Assembly: GCA_038087875.1 (NCBI GenBank)
Contig: CM075982.1
Span: 59,768,001 to 59,832,000 of the forward strand
Source: Malacoraja senta
Lineage: Eukaryota
Direction of reading: 5' to 3'
DNA: 64,000 nt
Shown here one piece after another: positions 25,947 to 57,110 of this stretch. Numbering within the stretch: the stretch's first letter is position 1; the number at the start of each line of letters is the position of its first letter. The translations under genes and the position numbers were made by a program. The notes below the pieces were generated by a model that was not told the origin of the DNA, did not search any database, and worked only from the letters and a program-made list of their open reading frames with translations.

Positions 25947-26078
25947 TCAGTTGTCATCTGCTTCAAGGTTAATGTTGTTTCCAAATTTTGCATAGAGCTG
26001 AACTTTAAGATCGGATAACATTTGCTGAATGGCTTCCACACGAGACTGTAAAGCCTGGATCTCTTCTTGAAGACTTTG
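25947..26078 (-). CDS. PFDN4: Prefoldin subunit 4, last coding exon (QSLQEEIQALQSRVEAIQQMLSDLKVQLYAKFGNNINLEADDN*)
   Basis: tttttcag acceptor; LKVQLYAKFG.NINLE C-terminal motif; TGA stop; the four exons sum to 134 aa as in human PFDN4. Confidence 0.97.
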   Translation of the reverse strand, partial: QSLQEEIQALQSRVEAIQQMLSDLKVQLYAKFGNNINLEADDN

Positions 26079-26399: not shown

Positions 26400-26925
26400 A
26401 ACAGATTTGTAGTTATAAACCACATAAACTGGCCTTTGGTCTCCCATGACCTTGCTGAACACCAAATATCCACCTAAACTAATACCATTTACCAGTACTT
26501 GGTCAGCGGTCTTCTATGTTTTGGCAACTTAAGTACTCAGCCAGATACTTTTTAAATAGTATGTGAGAGTAACCACCGCCATCATCTTCTCAGGTAATGC
26601 TGTCCAGATTCTATCCATTCGCTGGGTGAAAAATGTCTTCCTCGTATCCCCTTTAAATCTCATACAACTGCTACAGGGAAAATCTTGCACTATTTACCCT
26701 ATTTCTGACCCTCCTAATTTTGAATAGTGTCAGTTCAACCTTGCCTCCACCACTCTAAGGTAACCAAAGCCAGCCAATACAGTCTCTCCTCATAACTGAC
26801 ACTCCTCCATGTTAAGGAACATCCTAGTGAATCTACATCCTCTCCAGTGCAATTACCTTCTTCCTATCGTGTGGTGACCCAAACTGTTCTTGGTCCAGTA
26901 GCTGTGGCCTAACCTCTGTTCTAAA
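26400..26925 (-). mobile_element. Old CR1 LINE 3' fragment
   Basis: Reverse-complement similarity to CR1 3' ends. Confidence 0.55.
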
Positions 26926-27026
26926 GGGAATACATTGAACTGCAGATGCTGGTTAACAAACAAATACACAAAGTGCTTGAGTAACTTTGCCGGTCAGGCA
27001 GCATCTCTGGAGAACACGTTTCCTGT

Positions 27027-27164
27027 CTTCTTCTTACGGAGGGCGTGCACAGCCTAAAGCTGTAGGACAACTTGTTCTATTTGATCTTATTTGATTGTGC
27101 ACGCCGGGTTGATTGCATTCGTCGAAACAGGGCGGACCACGTGAAGGTTACAATCTTCCACCCC
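27027..27164 (-). mobile_element. 138-nt ribozyme-headed short retroposon (SINE/SIDE-like) with (AAG)n tail
   Basis: 11-bp TSD a(c/t)gtttcctgt at 27016-27026 and 27165-27175; 3' end CGTAAGAAGAAG; internal 10-bp stem GGCGTGCACA/TGTGCACGCC. Confidence 0.85.
27111..27164 (-). ncRNA. Minimal HDV-like (CPEB3-type) self-cleaving ribozyme
   Basis: GGGGUGG-AA-GAUUGUA-ACC-UUCACGU-GGU-CCGCCCU-G-UUUCGA-CGAA-UGCAAUC: 7-bp P1 with G1.U wobble, 7-bp P2, 3-bp P3, 7-nt L3, catalytic C in CGAA J4/2. Confidence 0.85.
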
Positions 27165-27303
27165 ATGTTTCCTGTGAAGACCCTTCTTCAGATTGATTGC
27201 GATGAGGGTGTGACACATTACATTAACAACATGGAGCTCACGGTCCATGGTTAGAGACCAACTTCGGGAGCGCCAAGCCGTGGGAGTTTCAACCACCTCG
27301 AGA

Positions 27304-29062
27304 GGTCCCATATAGGAGATAAGGTCCCACATAGGAGATTAGTGGGAAAAATTAGGGCACATGGTATTGGAGGTAGAGTGCTGACATGGATAGAGAAGTG
27401 GTTGGCAGACAGGAAACAAAGAGTAGGGATTAACGGGTCCCTTTCAGAATGGCAGGCAGTGACTAGTGGGGTACAGCAAGGCTCGGTGCTGGGACCGCAG
27501 CTATTTACAATATACATCAATGATTTGGATGAAGGGATTCAAAGTAACATTAGCAAATTTGCAGATGACACAAAGCTGGGTGGCAGTGTGAATTGTGAGG
27601 AGGATGCTATGAGAATGCAGGGTGACTTGGACAGGTTGGGGGAGTGGGCAGATGCATGGCAGATGAAGTTTAATGCGGATAAATGTGAGGTTATCTACTT
27701 TGGTAGCAAAAAGAGAAAGGCAGATTACCATCTAAATGGCGTCAAGTTGGGAAAAGGGGAAGTACAACGCAATCTGAGGGCCCTTGTACATCAGTCTATG
27801 AATGTAAGCATGCAGGTACAGCAGGCAGTGAAGAAAGCGAATGGCATGTTGGCCTTCATAACAAGAGGAATTGAATTATAGGAGCAAAGAGGTCCTTCTG
27901 CAGTTGTACAGAGCCCTAGTGAGACCACACCTGGAGTATTGTGTGCAGTTTTGGTCCCCTAATTTGAGGAAGGACATTCTTGCTATTGAGGGAGTGCAGC
28001 GTAGGTTTACAAGGTTAATTCCCGGGATGGCGGGACTGTCATATGCTGATCGAATGGAGCAGCTGGGCTTGTACACTCTGGAGTTTAAAAGGATGAGAGG
28101 AGATCTCATTGAAACAAAAAAGATTGTTAAGGGCTTGGACACACTGGAAGCAGGAAACATGTTCCCGATGTAGGGGGAGTCCAGAACCAGGGGCCACAGT
28201 TTAAGAATAAAGGCTCTGTCCCACGGGTTTGCGGTCATTGGCGGTGAAGCGCGGCGTCGCCGGAAGAGGGAACCACGAGAGCACCGCACGGCAACCACGA
28301 GAGCGCTGCACGGATGCTGCGCAGGGGCCGAGTACGGCCGGTTCCACGAGCTTGCGGCGTCGGGTGATGACGTCATCGCGCTACGCGATGACGTCTTTCG
28401 GATCGCGGGGCTGTGGCGGCGGCCGTGCCGCACACGTGCCTCACTGGCGGCGGTCGTGCCGCACATGTGCCTCACTGGCGGCGGCCGTGCCACACTGGCG
28501 AAGGCTGTGGCGGTGCAAGTTCGACGCACGGCGTTCGTGTCGCACTGGCGGCGGCTGTGGCGGTGACCGTGCCGCACTCGTGCCTCACTGGCGGCGGCTG
28601 TGCGGTAAGAACATATTTTTGGACAGTGTTGATTTTTTTTTAGCACCGTGCGGTGTTGGGAACAACGCCGCACGGCCCCGGAATTGTGCGTTTGACCGAG
28701 TCCGCGGTCTCTGGCGGTCCAGGAGCGGTAGATTCTTCCTGTTTCGCCGCCAATGACCGCAGACTCGTGAGACAGGCCTTTAAGGAGTAAGCCATTTAGA
28801 ACGGAGACGAGGAAACACTTTTTCTCACAGAGATTGGTGAGTCTGTGGAATTCTCTGTCTCAGAGGGCGGTGGAGGCAGGTTCTCTGGATGCTTTCAAGA
28901 GAGAGCTAGATAGGGCTCTTAAAAATAGCAGAGTCAGGGGATATGGGGAGAAGGCAGGAACGGGGTACTGATTGGGGATGATCAGCCATGATCACATTGA
29001 ATGGCGGTGCTGGCTCGAAGGGCCAAATGGCCTACTCCTGCACCTATTGTCTATTGTCTATT
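27304..29062 (+). mobile_element. CR1 LINE 3' portion (RT, 3' UTR, ctattgt tail)
   Basis: QGSVLGPQLFTIYINDL, KFADDTKL, LVRPHLEYCVQFW. Confidence 0.95.
28211..28780. mobile_element. PIF/Harbinger-like MITE inserted in CR1
   Basis: About 38-bp imperfect TIRs (AGGCTCTGTCCCAC.../...GTGAGACAGGCCTT), TAA TSD; CR1 sequence is continuous when it is removed. Confidence 0.8.
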
Positions 29063-30202: not shown

Positions 30203-30343
30203 CTTTGCAGCCTCCAGCATTTCCTGTGTCTCATCCTGGGAGTGACTAATAAATACTTCTCCAATTTGGTACGGCACCAGCACAGCATCTTCATCAAGCA
30301 TCATGATATCATCGGATGCATCTTCTAAGTTCTGTAGCTGTTT
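30203..30343 (-). CDS. PFDN4: Prefoldin subunit 4, coding exon 3 (KQLQNLEDASDDIMMLDEDAVLVPYQIGEVFISHSQDETQEMLEAAK)
   Basis: 141 nt, AG/GT bounded, phase 0; PYQIGEVFISHSQ motif. Confidence 0.97.
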
Positions 30344-31274: not shown

Positions 31275-31382
31275 CTTTTTCAGTTCTATTTCTTCCCGAA
31301 GTTCAATGAGCCTGTTATTATTTCTTGCAAATTTGTTAATTTTCTGTTGATCTTCAAAGGTAACATTAACATCTTCTACTGC
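31275..31382 (-). CDS. PFDN4: Prefoldin subunit 4, coding exon 2 (AVEDVNVTFEDQQKINKFARNNNRLIELREEIELKK)
   Basis: 108 nt, ctag acceptor and gtaa donor, phase 0; hallmark VNVTFEDQQKINKFAR. Confidence 0.97.
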
Positions 31383-41969: not shown

Positions 41970-42117
41970 NNNNNNNNNNNNNNNNNNNNNNNNNNNNNNN
42001 NNNNNNNNNNNNNNNNNNNNNNNNNNNNNNNNNNNNNNNNNNNNNNNNNNNNNNNNNNNNNNNNNNNNNNNNNNNNNNNNNNNNNNNNNNNNNNNNNNNN
42101 NNNNNNNNNNNNNNNNN
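41970..42117. other. Assembly gap
   Basis: N run. Confidence 1.
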
Positions 42118-48541: not shown

Positions 48542-51500
48542 CTTCTTCTTGCGAATGAAACATAAACCAAAGGAATAGTTAGATCTCAAGCCGGGTGTTG
48601 AGCAGCCAGGTTGTTGTCTCTGCGTCAATGTCTGCCAGGCCCTGAGCTCCATTTGGTGGGTGGTAGAGCGGGCACCCAGAGATGACATGGTTGGCTGTCT
48701 GTTGTTCTGCTCCGCATTCACAGTCTGGGCTCTGGCGGAGTCCCCATCTCCACATGCTGGCATTGAAAGTCTGTTGAGTACGAAGTCTGTTGAGCTTCAC
48801 CCATGCTCCTCTGTGGAGGTCAGACCCTGGACAGCTTTTATTTGGTGAAGAGATGTAGCTGTGTAATGGAGATGAGGTTGCCTTCCACTCCTGTGCTTTT
48901 GTCTCAGTTGGCTGGATGGATGTTAGGAGTTGTTTTCCATGTGGAGCAAAGGGACTTCAGTTGGGGTGGCCTCTGCTCTCTGCTGATAGCCTGATGGAGG
49001 AGGTGATCTGGGTCCATGGCACGACGAGATAGTGCCAGAGTTGCTGCCTGCCTTCGGATCCCTGCAGGTGGAATGCCTGCAAGTATAGGGAGCTGCTCGA
49101 CTGGAGTAGGTTGAAGGCACCCATGATCATTCATAAGGTGCTGTTCAGGCTCATGTCTACCAGGCTAGTATGTCTACTCCTACTCCATACGGGTGCGCAG
49201 TACTCAGCTGGGGCATTCACAAGAGCTAAGGCAGAGGTGCGAAGAATTGATGAACTGTTTCCCAACTTGTTCCTGCCAGGCATCAGATGAGGCCGCTACG
49301 TGCCATGACCTTGTAGCGGAGGCCAGCCAGGTGTTGATGAAATATAAGCGACCTGTCCAGCTTTATGCCGAGGTAAGTAGGTGTTTGTTGGAAGTCCAAG
49401 CGCCTGTTGTTAACAAAAACAGCTAGCTCACGTTTAGCTTCCTTGTTGTTTAAATGGATTGCTGTTGACACTGTTTTGCCTTCGCTCAGCTTTAGACGCC
49501 ACTGTCGTAGGTATACTGCCAAAGTCCCCATGTCTTGACTCAAGGAGCTTTCGATTGTCTTCCACTCTTTGTCTCATCAGGATGGCTAGATCGTCAGCAT
49601 ACCCATATTTGGATGTGCATGTTGAAAAGCAGCCATTCTGCAGTCTACGTAGCCTACTCTGCTGTCCGTGACTGGGCTTAAGCACAAAGCTGCGGTTTGA
49701 TATCAGCTCCATGATGTAGCGTACCATGTGCCTGTCTGGCAGCACCCGAAGTAGATTTGCAATTAATCCCCGGTGCCACACGATGTCATAGGCAGCTGTC
49801 AGGTCTATAAGAACAGCTCCTATCTTCTCATTTGCCTCAAAGCAGTCCTCAATATCTTGGGTGAGGAGGGTTACCTGGTCTGCAGTAGATCGACCTTGGC
49901 GGAAACCAGTCTGCTCGTGGAGTAGTTGAGGGTCAATGATGGGGTTGATATGCCCGTGGATCAGCCTCTCAAGGAGTTTGTATGGGAGGCAGAGGAACGA
50001 GATGGGCCGGTAGCTTTTAGGATCATCTTTTGGCTTGTTCGGCTTTGGGACAGCGATGACTGTTGTACAATGCTAGATCTTTGGTATTTTGCACTTCTCC
50101 ATGGAGGTCGACAGGTACTGTCGGATCCAGTTGGTAGCAGCATCTCCAGAATATAGTAGAAACTCCGGGTGTATGCTGTCAGATCCTGGGGCCTTTCCTG
50201 CTTTCAACATCTTGAGTGCTGTGGCCATTTCCTCGGGGGTGAAAGCCACTGTTAGGTCGGCATCCACTCTGTCAGTTTTCCATGACTCGGCCACCTCTTT
50301 GCTCACTTCGCGCGAGAAATCACTGTCAGAGTTTGTGAATCGACCATTCTTGACTAGTTGAGATGCGATTGCGTTGGCGGTCACTGGGCATTTGCTGGAT
50401 TTGGATGCAGCTTTGCCGGTCCGGTGGTTGACTGTGTGCGATGCTTTACGGCTCGAGTGGGTGAAGTCGATCGATTCAACCATCTCAATCCAGCATTCTT
50501 GTCGTTTCTCACCCAAGCGTGTGAGCAATGTAGTGGCAGTGGTTTCAGAATCCTCTTTGGTGCCAGCAGCAGTATGATCTTTGTATAGCTGTTGGCACTC
50601 ATCATCCCAACATGGAATGTAATCCCTCTGGTATCCATGGGGGATCCATCTGCACTGATAAGCATGCTGCAGTAGGCTTGGTAGGTAGAGTCCAGGTTGG
50701 TACTGTCTGGGGGAGGAAGGCCCGAGGTGGCTGCGTTGGTAAGTTGTTGGAACTTGTCCCAGTCGGCCTTGCGGAAGTTCCACCGCTTCACAGGTTTGCT
50801 CAATGTTGGTGCAACCAGTGGTGTTGTGGTGATGAGTGATGGTCGGTGTTGTGACCGTGGGAACTTCTCCAGAACCCGGCTCGTTGGTGGCTGATGGTTC
50901 TTTGAGTTACTGGCAAAGGCTAGGTCTGAGTTTGTAACAGTGATCCAGCGGGCTGAATGGAAGCTGTTTGGCTCCTTGGGATCATACAGAAGCGTGAGGT
51001 CATTGGCAGATGCCCAATCTATGAGGCCGTTTCCATCACTATTAAATCTTGAGTAGCCCCATTCGGTGTGGTTGAATCACCTGAGTATACACGGGAAGGG
51101 GTGAACACTGGTATGGATGTTGTAGCCAGACGCACTGGGGGAGGCTTGTACACATTGATGATGGTGACGTCCTGGACCTTCACTGCAAGATCTGAAGCTT
51201 CTGCAGACTGCCCTTCTATAGCCCAATTTGTGTCATCTCTGATGAAAGTGGCCAGACCATATTTACTACTTGGTGTGAAAGTAGCTAGTGTGAATTCAGG
51301 AATTGCGAGTTTCTCCACTGTTTCGCAATGTGTCTCCTGCAGGAGTATGACAGTCGCTTCGTTGGCGTATGCTAGCTGCTCAATTATGAATATCTTGGCA
51401 CTGTTGAGACCTTCGACATTCAGCTGTAGTATCCCAGCATCCTTGCCTTTGACTGTAACTGCCGCCCGCTCTGAAAAGAGTGCGAAGCATGGCTCAGAGC

Positions 51501-52398
51501 TGTGACATTCAGTCTTTGTCCTTGGTTTGGTTACGTGTTACCGGCAACTGTCTCTGTAAATAGCTCGTTCTAAGCTCCCCACAGTCTCGTTTCAGTCAAT
51601 AAAATACTGATTCCCCTATACAATACCTAATCACTGCGGTTTCGACCCTTGTATCTGCTTGGCCAAGCCCTTCTAGCCTCGCTAGCCTCGTGTAAGCAGA
51701 GGTACTCCAAAAGGTCATGCAGTCCCAAGCGCTCTTACAGAAGATCGACATCAGACTTTGTGGGAGCTGCCTTTTGTAGGTCCCCGAAACTTGAGGGGCC
51801 TAACCACATGAGGGTGGTCTCTTTATAATCCAATTATATATATTGATTTATAACAGTACATAATTGACAATTCATCCAACCCAATAATATAATCTTAAAT
51901 GCATTGTATTCGAAAGAAGCTTCTAGAAGGAAGCCAACACAAATGAATAGTGCAACATGTGCCCTGGGATTCAAACAGTTCCTCCAAGGCTCAACATTTC
52001 AACCAATCAACAATTAACAGATTAACCATCTCGCAACATTATGTATACTATTTACAATACCCTTGCAGCGATCCAATCAAAATGATGCATTTAAGGTTTG
52101 TTTGCAAGACTGCTATATATTTTTTATCAAGTTAGGAGAAACAAGGAGAACACCTGTATCCTTCACCATCCTGCATATCAGTCTAAGCCTAGACTGGTTG
52201 GCATCATCCAAAGCCTGTAAATTTCAGCTGACAAGGGTTAAGCAATTCTAACGTGCAGGGATCCTCCATTTTATGGTGTCTTTAATTTGGTCAGTATTAA
52301 CATCTCGTCGAAGTATTCCATGAGAGAAGACTAACTATAGTAACAGGAGATACCACGAGAATGTTGCCGACATCTCTTCCCGGTACAAATCCAAACAT
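48542..52398 (-). mobile_element. Near full-length, decayed Vingi/Ingi-like non-LTR retrotransposon (single ORF: APE endonuclease, RT, CCHC)
   Basis: GILQLNVEGL..LQETH, FHSARW, FPRSQHRP (EN); KAPGSD, QTGFRQGRST, DLTAAYD, YADDLA, YLGIKLDR (RT); CECGAEQQTANHVISGCP; no ORF1 or RNase H seen; (AAG)n tail; 13-bp TSD cagt(c/t)gatgggct at 48529-48541 and 52399-52411; frameshifted. Confidence 0.85.
51555..52302 (-). mobile_element. Solo LTR (ERV/Gypsy-like) inserted in the Vingi 5' UTR
   Basis: TG...CA termini (TGTAAAT...ATTAACA on +), 4-bp TSD TCTC; homologous to 20221-20932. Confidence 0.8.
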
Positions 52399-56344: not shown

Positions 56345-57110
56345 ACAGAGATGCAAAAGACTGCAGGTGCTGGAATCTGGAGCAATACACAAAGTGCTGG
56401 TGGAACTCAATGGGTCAGGCAGCATCGGTGGAGGGAATGGACAAAATAGTTAGAGCTGAAGTCTTAAAAGGAAGGTGGTACAAGTGCTGTCTGGGATCTT
56501 ACAACTGAAGCTGATCCCGGAAGACCCTTCTTCAGACTGATTGTAGGGGGCAGTAAGAAAGTCGGGATAGAGAAGGGGCAGGACAGACCAATGCCAATGT
56601 TATTTATTATATAGTTAGTTAATTATATAGTTAGCTATTTTAAGGAACTAACCCACAACAGCCTCCTCCCCCTCACTTTTCTCCTTCCCCACCCCACTTT
56701 CTTTCACCCTCCCTCCCCTTCCCCTCCCTCCACTGAAACCTGGTTGGCCTTGCAGCAGTTTGTCCCCCTCCCTCTCCACTTCTACCATTTACAATGGATA
56801 CACAATTCTCAATTTTCCGTTCCCTGAGCTAAAGATATTCGCAACTCTTTATCCTCTCGGGCTCACACCTGTCTTCTCATTCCTGGCCTTTGTCCACCAA
56901 TCTGCCTATCAAATAACCCCCTCGTCTATGTTCACCTATTACTGGCCATGCTCTGTCCTGCCCCTTCCCTAACCCAGTTTTCTTTAACGCTCTCCCCTCC
57001 CCCCCCCCCCCACCCACAAACAGTCTCAAGAAGGATTGTGACCCGAAACCACCTACTGTACTTATGTTCTGTATAGACCTGTTGAATTACTCCAGCATTT
57101 TGTGTCTATC
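56345..57110. mobile_element. Decayed PLE terminal regions in opposite orientations
   Basis: Minus-strand hammerhead-like core near 56520-56540 and plus-strand core near 57020-57050. Confidence 0.5.

Follow-up and report, generated by a model that had tools for sequence, protein, structure and literature searches.

We analyzed a 64,000-nt stretch of the genome of the cartilaginous fish Malacoraja senta (assembly GCA_038087875.1, contig CM075982.1, positions 59,768,001 to 59,832,000; hereafter the window). Our focus was a 138-nt insertion on its minus strand (27164–27027, 3' end GUAAGAAGAAG), which lies in sense orientation in the last intron of a prefoldin-4-like gene. The evidence supported the reading that a fold of the hepatitis delta virus (HDV)/CPEB3 type, lacking the P4 helix, forms the exact 5' end (within 1–2 nt) of a short retroposon. 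The analysis established the anatomy of this element, its family, its 5' boundary, the homology of its head to the ribozyme heads of long interspersed nuclear elements (LINEs), the covariation of its helices, and a shared 3' terminus. We consider it likely that the insertion is a full-length copy of an abundant, non-autonomous LINE derivative, whose ribozyme head would cut host transcripts and which a LINE reverse transcriptase (RT) would mobilize in trans.

The head and the boundaries of the element

The head, GGGGUGGAAGAUUGUAACCUUCACGUGGUCCGCCCUGUUUCGACGAAUGCAAUC, occupies 27164–27111 of the minus strand and occurs once in the window. A preliminary description of this DNA had parsed it as a complete minimal HDV-like ribozyme, and both string and parse held: all 17 pairs of the drawn fold were standard. 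Numbering the head from its first base (position i is 27165 minus the window coordinate), P1 has 7 bp (1–7 with 30–36, including wobbles G1.U36 and U5.G32), P2 has 7 bp (10–16 with 48–54, including U15.G49), and P3 has 3 bp (17–19 with 27–29). These helices follow the nested double-pseudoknot order of HDV-like ribozymes (P1-P2-P3-L3-P3'-P1'-(P4)-J4/2-P2'). P1 is closed by the G1.U36 wobble, and J4/2 begins with the expected C-N-A-A motif (C44-G45-A46-A47, 27121–27118). A single putative pair, C22-G37, would form P1.1 between L3 and J1/4. The P4 helix is absent from the head, in which only 5 nt separate J1/4 from J4/2. A UUCG tetraloop had earlier been proposed here as a P4 stub, which we rejected: G42 is freely variable across the family, being A in 12–15% of family depth, and the stretch is better read as a 5-nt linker. 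The parts of the head are as follows.

27111–27164, minus strand: predicted 54-nt P4-less HDV-like ribozyme head (from sequence, pairing check, covariance model and covariation)
27164–27158 with 27135–27129, minus strand: P1, with G1 at 27164
27157–27156, minus strand: J1/2
27155–27149 with 27117–27111, minus strand: P2
27148–27146 with 27138–27136, minus strand: P3
27145–27139, minus strand: L3 (UUCACGU)
27128–27122, minus strand: J1/4 and the 5-nt linker
27121–27118, minus strand: J4/2 (CGAA), with the predicted catalytic C at 27121

We searched both strands of the window with our own HDV descriptor (7-bp P1, 6–8-bp P2, 3-bp P3, and C-N-A-A). The head was the only site found, with an alternative register one base upstream. 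Looser descriptors gave many false matches, several per 7–9 kb in unrelated loci, and the parse alone therefore proves little. Single-strand folding of the head was uninformative (z −0.3) because pseudoknots are not modelled.

The boundaries of the insertion were well defined. It is flanked by an 11-nt target-site duplication whose copies differ once (CpG to CpA), and it sits within another abundant repeat, the other copies of which run through the site uninterrupted. Its 3' half contains a stable stem-loop (27105–27042; −22.6 kcal/mol, z −3.6, 0 of 200 shuffles as stable), which is probably the part recognized by the LINE RT. The element has the target-site duplication, the dispersed copies and the lack of an open reading frame (ORF) of a bipartite non-autonomous LINE. 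ARAGORN found no tRNA-like head in the 138 nt, and no small-RNA head was matched by Rfam; the element accordingly lacks the RNA polymerase III-type head of a classical short interspersed nuclear element (SINE). The features outside the head are listed here.

27165–27175, minus strand: upstream copy of the target-site duplication, ACAGGAAACAT
27042–27105, minus strand: branched 3' stem-loop closed by GGCGUGCAC/GUGCACGCC (from folding)
27027–27041, minus strand: 3' terminus, CUCCGU then (AAG)3; the family majority reads CCATACGC(AAG)n
27016–27026, minus strand: downstream copy of the target-site duplication, ACAGGAAACGT

The surrounding host repeat (26916–27026 and 27165–27200; also about 56380–56640) reads …GAAGAAGGGTC…GAAACGT…GATGCTGCCTGACC…AGCACTTTGTGT. 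It was extremely abundant and was transcribed in all runs examined.

To describe the family, contigs of DNA runs and reads of an RNA run (organism codes A, B, E, F, and I) were aligned at 80% likeness; depth in these alignments is not copy number. Each DNA run yielded 8,800–11,000 contigs on a 166-nt stretch (codes A, E, and F), with the same depth in B. Summed depth on 27027–27164 was in the millions, versus about 26 on unique flank, and 31-mers of the element were present in runs of eight organism codes. Thousands of contigs carried unrelated flanks, and their non-matching parts gave a random, AT-rich consensus. Divergence of the flanks piled up at 27164, 27165, and 27166 on the 5' side and at 27026, 27027, and 27042 on the 3' side, where the family ends in (AAG)n of variable length. 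To within one or two bases, then, the family begins at the predicted cleavage site. Two earlier proposals, that the predicted cleavage base G1 is the 5' boundary of the element and that the head was spread by a short retroposon, were thus borne out. The family-wide match at 27165 (T on the element strand) exceeded the expectation for random AT-rich flanks; target-site preference, an extra templated base, or the alternative P1 register could account for this excess.

Variation within the family was consistent with the fold. The majority has C15 (98% of family depth), forming a C-G pair, where the present copy keeps U.G. The variant G32A (21–27%) turns U5.G into U5-A, and C31U (5–11%) gives G6.U. 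A8G (about 52%) lies in unpaired J1/2, and G45U (21–25%) and G45A (9–12%) affect the variable base after the catalytic C. The predicted catalytic C itself was changed in 2–5% of depth (C44U) despite its CpG context, and U36C, which would abolish the G1.U wobble, stayed below 0.5%. Among the variants listed, every one at a frequency of at least 10% kept the fold. Since 72% of conceivable transitions, and 48% of single changes of any kind, would also keep it, this result is supportive but not decisive. Compared with the family majority, the head of the present copy has no differences other than U for C at position 15 and the polymorphic J1/2 base; this copy is probably active if the family ribozyme is active.

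Homology with the 5' ends of LINEs

The window contains one LINE of the type that we regard as the partner of the element.

About 48542–52398, minus strand: old, broken LINE of partner type (from RT motifs; remnants of endonuclease, RT with YADD, and a C-terminal CCHC)

This copy was located through its RT motifs; Pfam gave no match for ten ORFs of the window. Its target duplication is AGCCCATC(A/G)ACTG, its short 3' untranslated region (UTR) ends in CATTCGC(AAG)3, and a degenerate ribozyme core lies at 52380–52343 on the minus strand. Only two runs of (AAG) with at least three units occur in the window, and they end the 138-nt element and this LINE. P1 of the LINE core appears expanded by 3 nt, and an insertion resembling a long terminal repeat (TGT...ACA, about 52340–51545) splits the core from CAGT-TGCCGGT (P2').

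A 236-amino acid piece of the window LINE identified 1157 relatives among protein representatives. Full-length relatives are about 1000 amino acids long and combine Exo_endo_phos with RVT_1 but have no RNase H, which appeared only in more distant matches; named relatives came from a teleost, tunicates, and insects. This domain content (APE endonuclease and RT, no RNase H) fits Vingi, the sister of Ingi without RNase H (PMC13708176).

Six of the LINEs (L002, L003, L006, L009, L010, and L011) had an HDV-like frame that either overlaps the start of the ORF or lies immediately before it. Each frame consists of a GGGG-rich P1, AA, a 6–7-bp P2, a 3-bp P3, an L3 of the form U(U/C)C-N-CG-N, and CCCU-G, followed by a P4 of 20 to about 115 nt, C-N-A-A, and P2'. 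Two of them matched Rfam HDV_ribozyme over the full length but below threshold (L002, 26.4 bits; L006, 23.9 bits). All six LINE heads have C22 and G37, as do the element and the CPEB3 consensus. In L002, L009, and L011 the initiator ATG (at 188, 271, and 231, respectively) falls within J4/2-P2', so that the ORF starts inside the last helix, an arrangement in keeping with translation initiation coupled to the ribozyme. An AUG is retained at the corresponding place in the element (A47-U48-G49, 27116–27118), followed by a 13-codon ORF. Of the remaining relatives, L004 has a 5' UTR of only 39 nt, and L005 starts inside the ribozyme.

The 3' ends were shared over a short distance. The terminus of L009, GACATACGC(AAG)4, has the form CATACGC(AAG)n, like the family-majority tail of the element, and other LINE relatives have (AG)n, (GA)n, or (TAC)n at their 3' ends. 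Likeness at this end was confined to CATACGC(AAG)n in L009 and CAT(T)CGC(AAG)3 in the window LINE, and BLAST gave no longer similarity.

We built a covariance model, R1 (38 positions, 10 pairs), solely from the 5' parts of the six LINEs, all of which came from other samples; the element and the window LINE were outside the training set. R1 was limited to the 5' 38 nt, which hold P1 and P3, because MAFFT misaligned the P4 and P2' parts of the full-length ribozymes; P2 was counted in hand-anchored frames. The model had exactly two matches in the 64-kb window. One was the head of the element (27164–27127, 45.3 bits, E 9.3e-9), aligned end to end with model position 1 on G1, and the other was the 5' end of the window LINE (52380–52343, 21.7 bits, E 0.006). 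R1 also matched L007:513-551 and the truncated start of L005. By this model, the 5' end of the element is homologous to the 5' ends of autonomous LINEs, as in a bipartite non-autonomous LINE.

Covariation was examined in eight sequences (the element, the six LINEs, and the Rfam CPEB3 consensus) in frames anchored on J1/2, P3, and J4/2. Standard pairs filled 130 of 135 cells, and 13 of the 17 pairs of P1, P2, and P3 had changed on both sides, which, with the frequent listed family variants that keep pairing, upheld the helices of the original parse. P2 paired at 98% with its own strand versus a mean of 58% (maximum 70%) with the strand of another sequence. For all helices together the values were 96% for own partners versus a mean of 67% (maximum 77%) when partners were swapped between sequences.

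At the gathering thresholds of Rfam there were no matches in the whole window, and at E ≤ 10 on 501 nt the only match was a spurious one to RNase_MRP. In a 76-nt search, and only there, the CPEB3_ribozyme model aligned over its whole length and placed its cleavage site at 27164 (25.7 bits, E 1.8e-5), P4 being shortened from 16 to 3 nt in the alignment. The score lay below the CPEB3 threshold of 35 bits, and by the rule that Rfam applies the head falls outside RF00622. It also lies away from that family's single locus, as part of a multicopy element in the intron of a prefoldin gene in a cartilaginous fish. CPEB3 is nevertheless its closest curated relative.

One more distant LINE (L008:1316-1401, GCA_023078275.1) has a frame of another kind: P1 is GGGGGAT/GTCCCCC, P2 has 9 bp (TTGTTACTC/GAGTAACAA), J4/2 is CTAAAC, there is almost no P4, and an oversized L3 of ~28 nt has its own hairpin; R1 did not match it. 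We rejected as chance the sole match of the core 20-mer in metagenome, prokaryote-genome, and viral collections (L001), which is GC-rich bacterial coding DNA.

Predicted cleavage, proposed mobilization, and alternative readings

In the explanation that we favor, the first 54 nt would be a minimal HDV-like ribozyme descended from the same source as the heads of single-ORF endonuclease/RT LINEs resembling Vingi. The partner clade would have no RNase H and microsatellite 3' ends, and its large P4 domain would be replaced in the element by the 5-nt linker. The element would carry no promoter and would be transcribed within host RNAs (such as introns and read-through transcripts). Its ribozyme would cut just 5' of G1, with C44 in J4/2 as the general acid and with help from the G1.U36 wobble and the one-pair P1.1 (C22-G37). 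The cut would free an RNA starting exactly at the first base of the element, whose 3' stem-loop and CATACGC(AAG)n could then be used in trans by the LINE RT in target-primed reverse transcription. The expected outcome is full-length copies with 9–13-bp target duplications. Within this scheme we infer the catalysis, the read-through transcription, and the mobilization by a partner LINE.

Self-cleavage of the head is predicted from its sequence, and published work on close architectural relatives makes it plausible. Cleavage in vitro, at rates of 0.002 to >10 per min, has been shown for P4-less HDV-like ribozymes of ~50 nt whose L3 is UUCCCGU and whose J4/2 is CUAA; a C to U change abolishes it, and P4 is dispensable in this minimal subclass (PMC10879173). 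We looked for a trace of cleavage in raw reads of poly(A) RNA from a related organism. About 296 reads passed from the element into dissimilar 5' flank, and about 290 did so at the 3' side; no position with an accumulation of molecule starts was reported. The corresponding 5'/3' junction ratio in DNA contigs was 1.04–1.25, so any depletion of the 5' junction in RNA is small. It follows that most of the copies in transcripts are uncut, antisense, or dead. The same run had no reads on the unique flanks in the prefoldin intron.

Several observations weigh against our explanation. There was no excess of read ends at G1 in the poly(A) RNA reads; this null result is not evidence against cleavage, because the library was poly(A)-selected, so that some cleavage products would be lost, and came from another organism, and because most copies may be dead or antisense. 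All Rfam scores fell below gathering thresholds. Copies that match the base before G1 are about as many as copies that stop at G1. The window LINE has ~17 nt (ATGTTTGGATTTGTACC) between its target duplication and its predicted G1 (about 52381). The closest LINE heads found (L009 and the window LINE) differ from the element in the sequence of P1 and P2, so the element cannot be derived from that LINE simply by internal deletion. Because the LINE helices were located in part with a descriptor that requires pairing, the pair counts are biased in favor of the fold, although the R1 result is free of this bias for P1 and P3. Lastly, the variant evidence covers only the variants listed, beyond which there are 48 more.

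A first alternative is that the head is a catalytically dead relic of a LINE ribozyme, in which P4 loss and drift would have ended cleavage. The 5' part would have been kept as an internal promoter, as Pr77 is in L1Tc/NARTc, or for binding of a LINE protein, and the sharp 5' end would come from a transcription start or from complete reverse transcription. We judged this unlikely. It would explain why RNA ends are not in excess at G1 and why 5'-junction reads are as common as 3' reads, as well as the missing P4 and the sub-threshold Rfam scores. A precedent for double use exists, in that the first 77 nt of L1Tc are both promoter and ribozyme (PMC3383444), and the element keeps an AUG where its LINE relatives have their start codon. 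However, P4-less HDV-like ribozymes are active in vitro (PMC10879173), and the catalytic C, G1.U36, and C22/G37 are all kept, as is pairing in the frequent family variants listed. Moreover, P1, P2, and P3 covary with the LINE versions, which is expected for selection on a fold and not for a linear promoter motif.

The remaining alternatives concern this copy alone or the resemblance itself. The exons that define the host intron are as follows.

31275–31382, minus strand: further exon of the prefoldin gene
30203–30343, minus strand: prefoldin exon upstream of the element's intron (Prefoldin_2 profile positions 26–71, E 3e-9)
25950–26072, minus strand: last prefoldin exon (Prefoldin_2 profile positions 74–105, then a stop codon)

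With Prefoldin_2 exons of the minus strand on both sides, the earlier placement of the element as sense and intronic stood, G1 being 1092 nt upstream of the last exon. The label "intron 3" assumes one further, unlocated upstream exon; this label and the name PFDN4 follow the human protein and are tentative.

A takeover of this copy by the host as an intronic ribozyme like that of CPEB3, tuning prefoldin mRNA in competition with splicing, appeared very improbable. In its favor are the sense, intronic position of the copy and a fold that is intact by comparison with the family majority. Yet this copy is one of many thousands, lies inside another repeat, and shows ordinary tail decay. Only seconds would pass before the 3' splice site of the last exon is made, whereas the CPEB3 ribozyme, with a half-life of 2–3 min, has about 10 kb in which to act (PMC10919898). 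The ~1.1 kb between G1 and the last exon leave little time for cleavage, and any effect on prefoldin mRNA is probably small. Chance resemblance of a random piece of repeat to the HDV fold, although loose descriptors match falsely so often, is extremely unlikely, given that the independent model of LINE 5' ends matches at E 9e-9 from the first base of the element and that the fold is common to a huge family and covaries.

Relation to known systems and neighboring features

HDV-like ribozymes are established at the 5' ends of R1, R2, R4, RTE, Ingi/L1Tc, and LOA LINEs, bipartite non-autonomous LINEs are known from RTE, Ingi, Vingi, and R2, and pieces of the Vingi 5' UTR occur inside SINEs (PMC5786205). 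A ribozyme-headed non-autonomous LINE is thus already known; what is new here is a P4-less CPEB3-like core in a vertebrate and this LINE clade as its source. The nearest precedents are NARTc/RIME (of L1Tc/Ingi) and R2 SIDE, the latter from Eickbush (2012) as that work is cited in PMC5786205. Like the present element, they are short and ORF-less, begin with a LINE 5' HDV-like ribozyme, and have its known or predicted cleavage site as their 5' end; they join the ribozyme to the LINE 3' end and are mobilized in trans (PMC3383444, PMC4035085). In contrast to NARTc and R2 SIDE, our element has lost P4, leaving a predicted ribozyme of 54 nt, has only ~10 nt and the microsatellite in common with a LINE 3' end, and has a head that simple deletion from the nearest LINE head found would not yield.

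In architecture the head resembles the drz-Mtgn and theta ribozymes of gut phages, with which it shares P1, J1/2, P2, a 3-bp P3, a 7-nt L3, a short linker in place of P4, a C-N-A-A J4/2, and a length of ~50 nt (PMC10879173). L3 reads UUCCCGU in that class and UUCACGU in the element. Nearly 99% of this minimal class lies in Caudoviricetes phages, often beside tRNAs, and it has been described as almost confined to phages; the search of eukaryotes behind that claim was made without skate-like genomes (PMC10879173). Unlike the theta class, the present head belongs to a eukaryotic retroposon, has a 7-bp P2, and comes from a P4-bearing LINE ribozyme; the two are likened by architecture. The partner LINE, in turn, is likened to Vingi (Kojima 2011, 2018) by domain content: both have a single ORF of ~1000 amino acids with APE endonuclease and RT but no RNase H. 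Vingi also gives rise to bipartite non-autonomous derivatives and donates 5' UTR pieces to SINEs (PMC5786205), and Vingi-1 is under development as a gene-insertion tool (PMC13708176). In the literature searched we found no report of a ribozyme in Vingi, and nothing joining HDV-like, SINE, and skate.

If the head cleaves, this would be a very high-copy family of vertebrate retroposons that needs no promoter of its own to spread, because it excises its RNA from host transcripts, and skates and their relatives would have tens of thousands of potential RNA-cleavage sites in their introns and UTRs. Ribozymes of the HDV-like type at 5' ends would extend to a further LINE clade, and minimal P4-less forms would exist outside phages.

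The mammalian CPEB3 intronic ribozyme (RF00622) is like the element in its L3 (UUCACGU), in CCCUGU and CGAAU, all identical in the Rfam consensus line as the preliminary description had indicated, in its G1.U wobble and one-pair P1.1, and in lying in an intron sense to its gene. It differs in having P4 and in the sequences of the P1 3' half, P2, and P3, with 10 pairs changed on both sides. It also resides at a single conserved locus in another gene, whereas the element is multicopy and mobile. The 11 nt upstream of G1 (ACAGGAAACAU, the target duplication, 27165–27175) match CPEB3 model positions 1–11 at 6 of 11 bases, which is probably chance.

A retroposon origin of CPEB3-type ribozymes, at which the earlier reading had hinted, is compatible with these data but speculative, and the likeness could be convergence of a constrained core. 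The human genome contains a Vingi fossil, X12_LINE (PMC5753468), which is compatible with such an origin. The stronger version, that CPEB3 came from an insertion of this retroposon lineage (a Vingi-type LINE or a short derivative) and that P4-less minimal HDV ribozymes arose independently in vertebrate retroposons, is possible, but we consider it doubtful. If CPEB3 does descend in this way, the element would be an extant relative of the ancestor of a ribozyme until now regarded as an orphan confined to mammals, and minimal P4-less ribozymes would be more than a phage trait. The origin of the CPEB3 ribozyme becomes testable through retroposon remnants around it; the literature searched held nothing joining "CPEB3 ribozyme" with "Vingi".

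Some neighboring features of the window may be recorded. A fragment of a different LINE (27342–27881, plus strand; RVT_1, FADDTKL) lies directly upstream of the element and antisense to the prefoldin gene, and its depth in the runs is likewise in the millions. A GC-rich minisatellite with units of ~31 nt (GGCTGTGGCGGCGGCCGTGCCGCACACG…) occupies 28409–28608, within overlapping ORFs of both strands. Runs of N are present at 1319–1522, 2922–3803, and 41970–42117.
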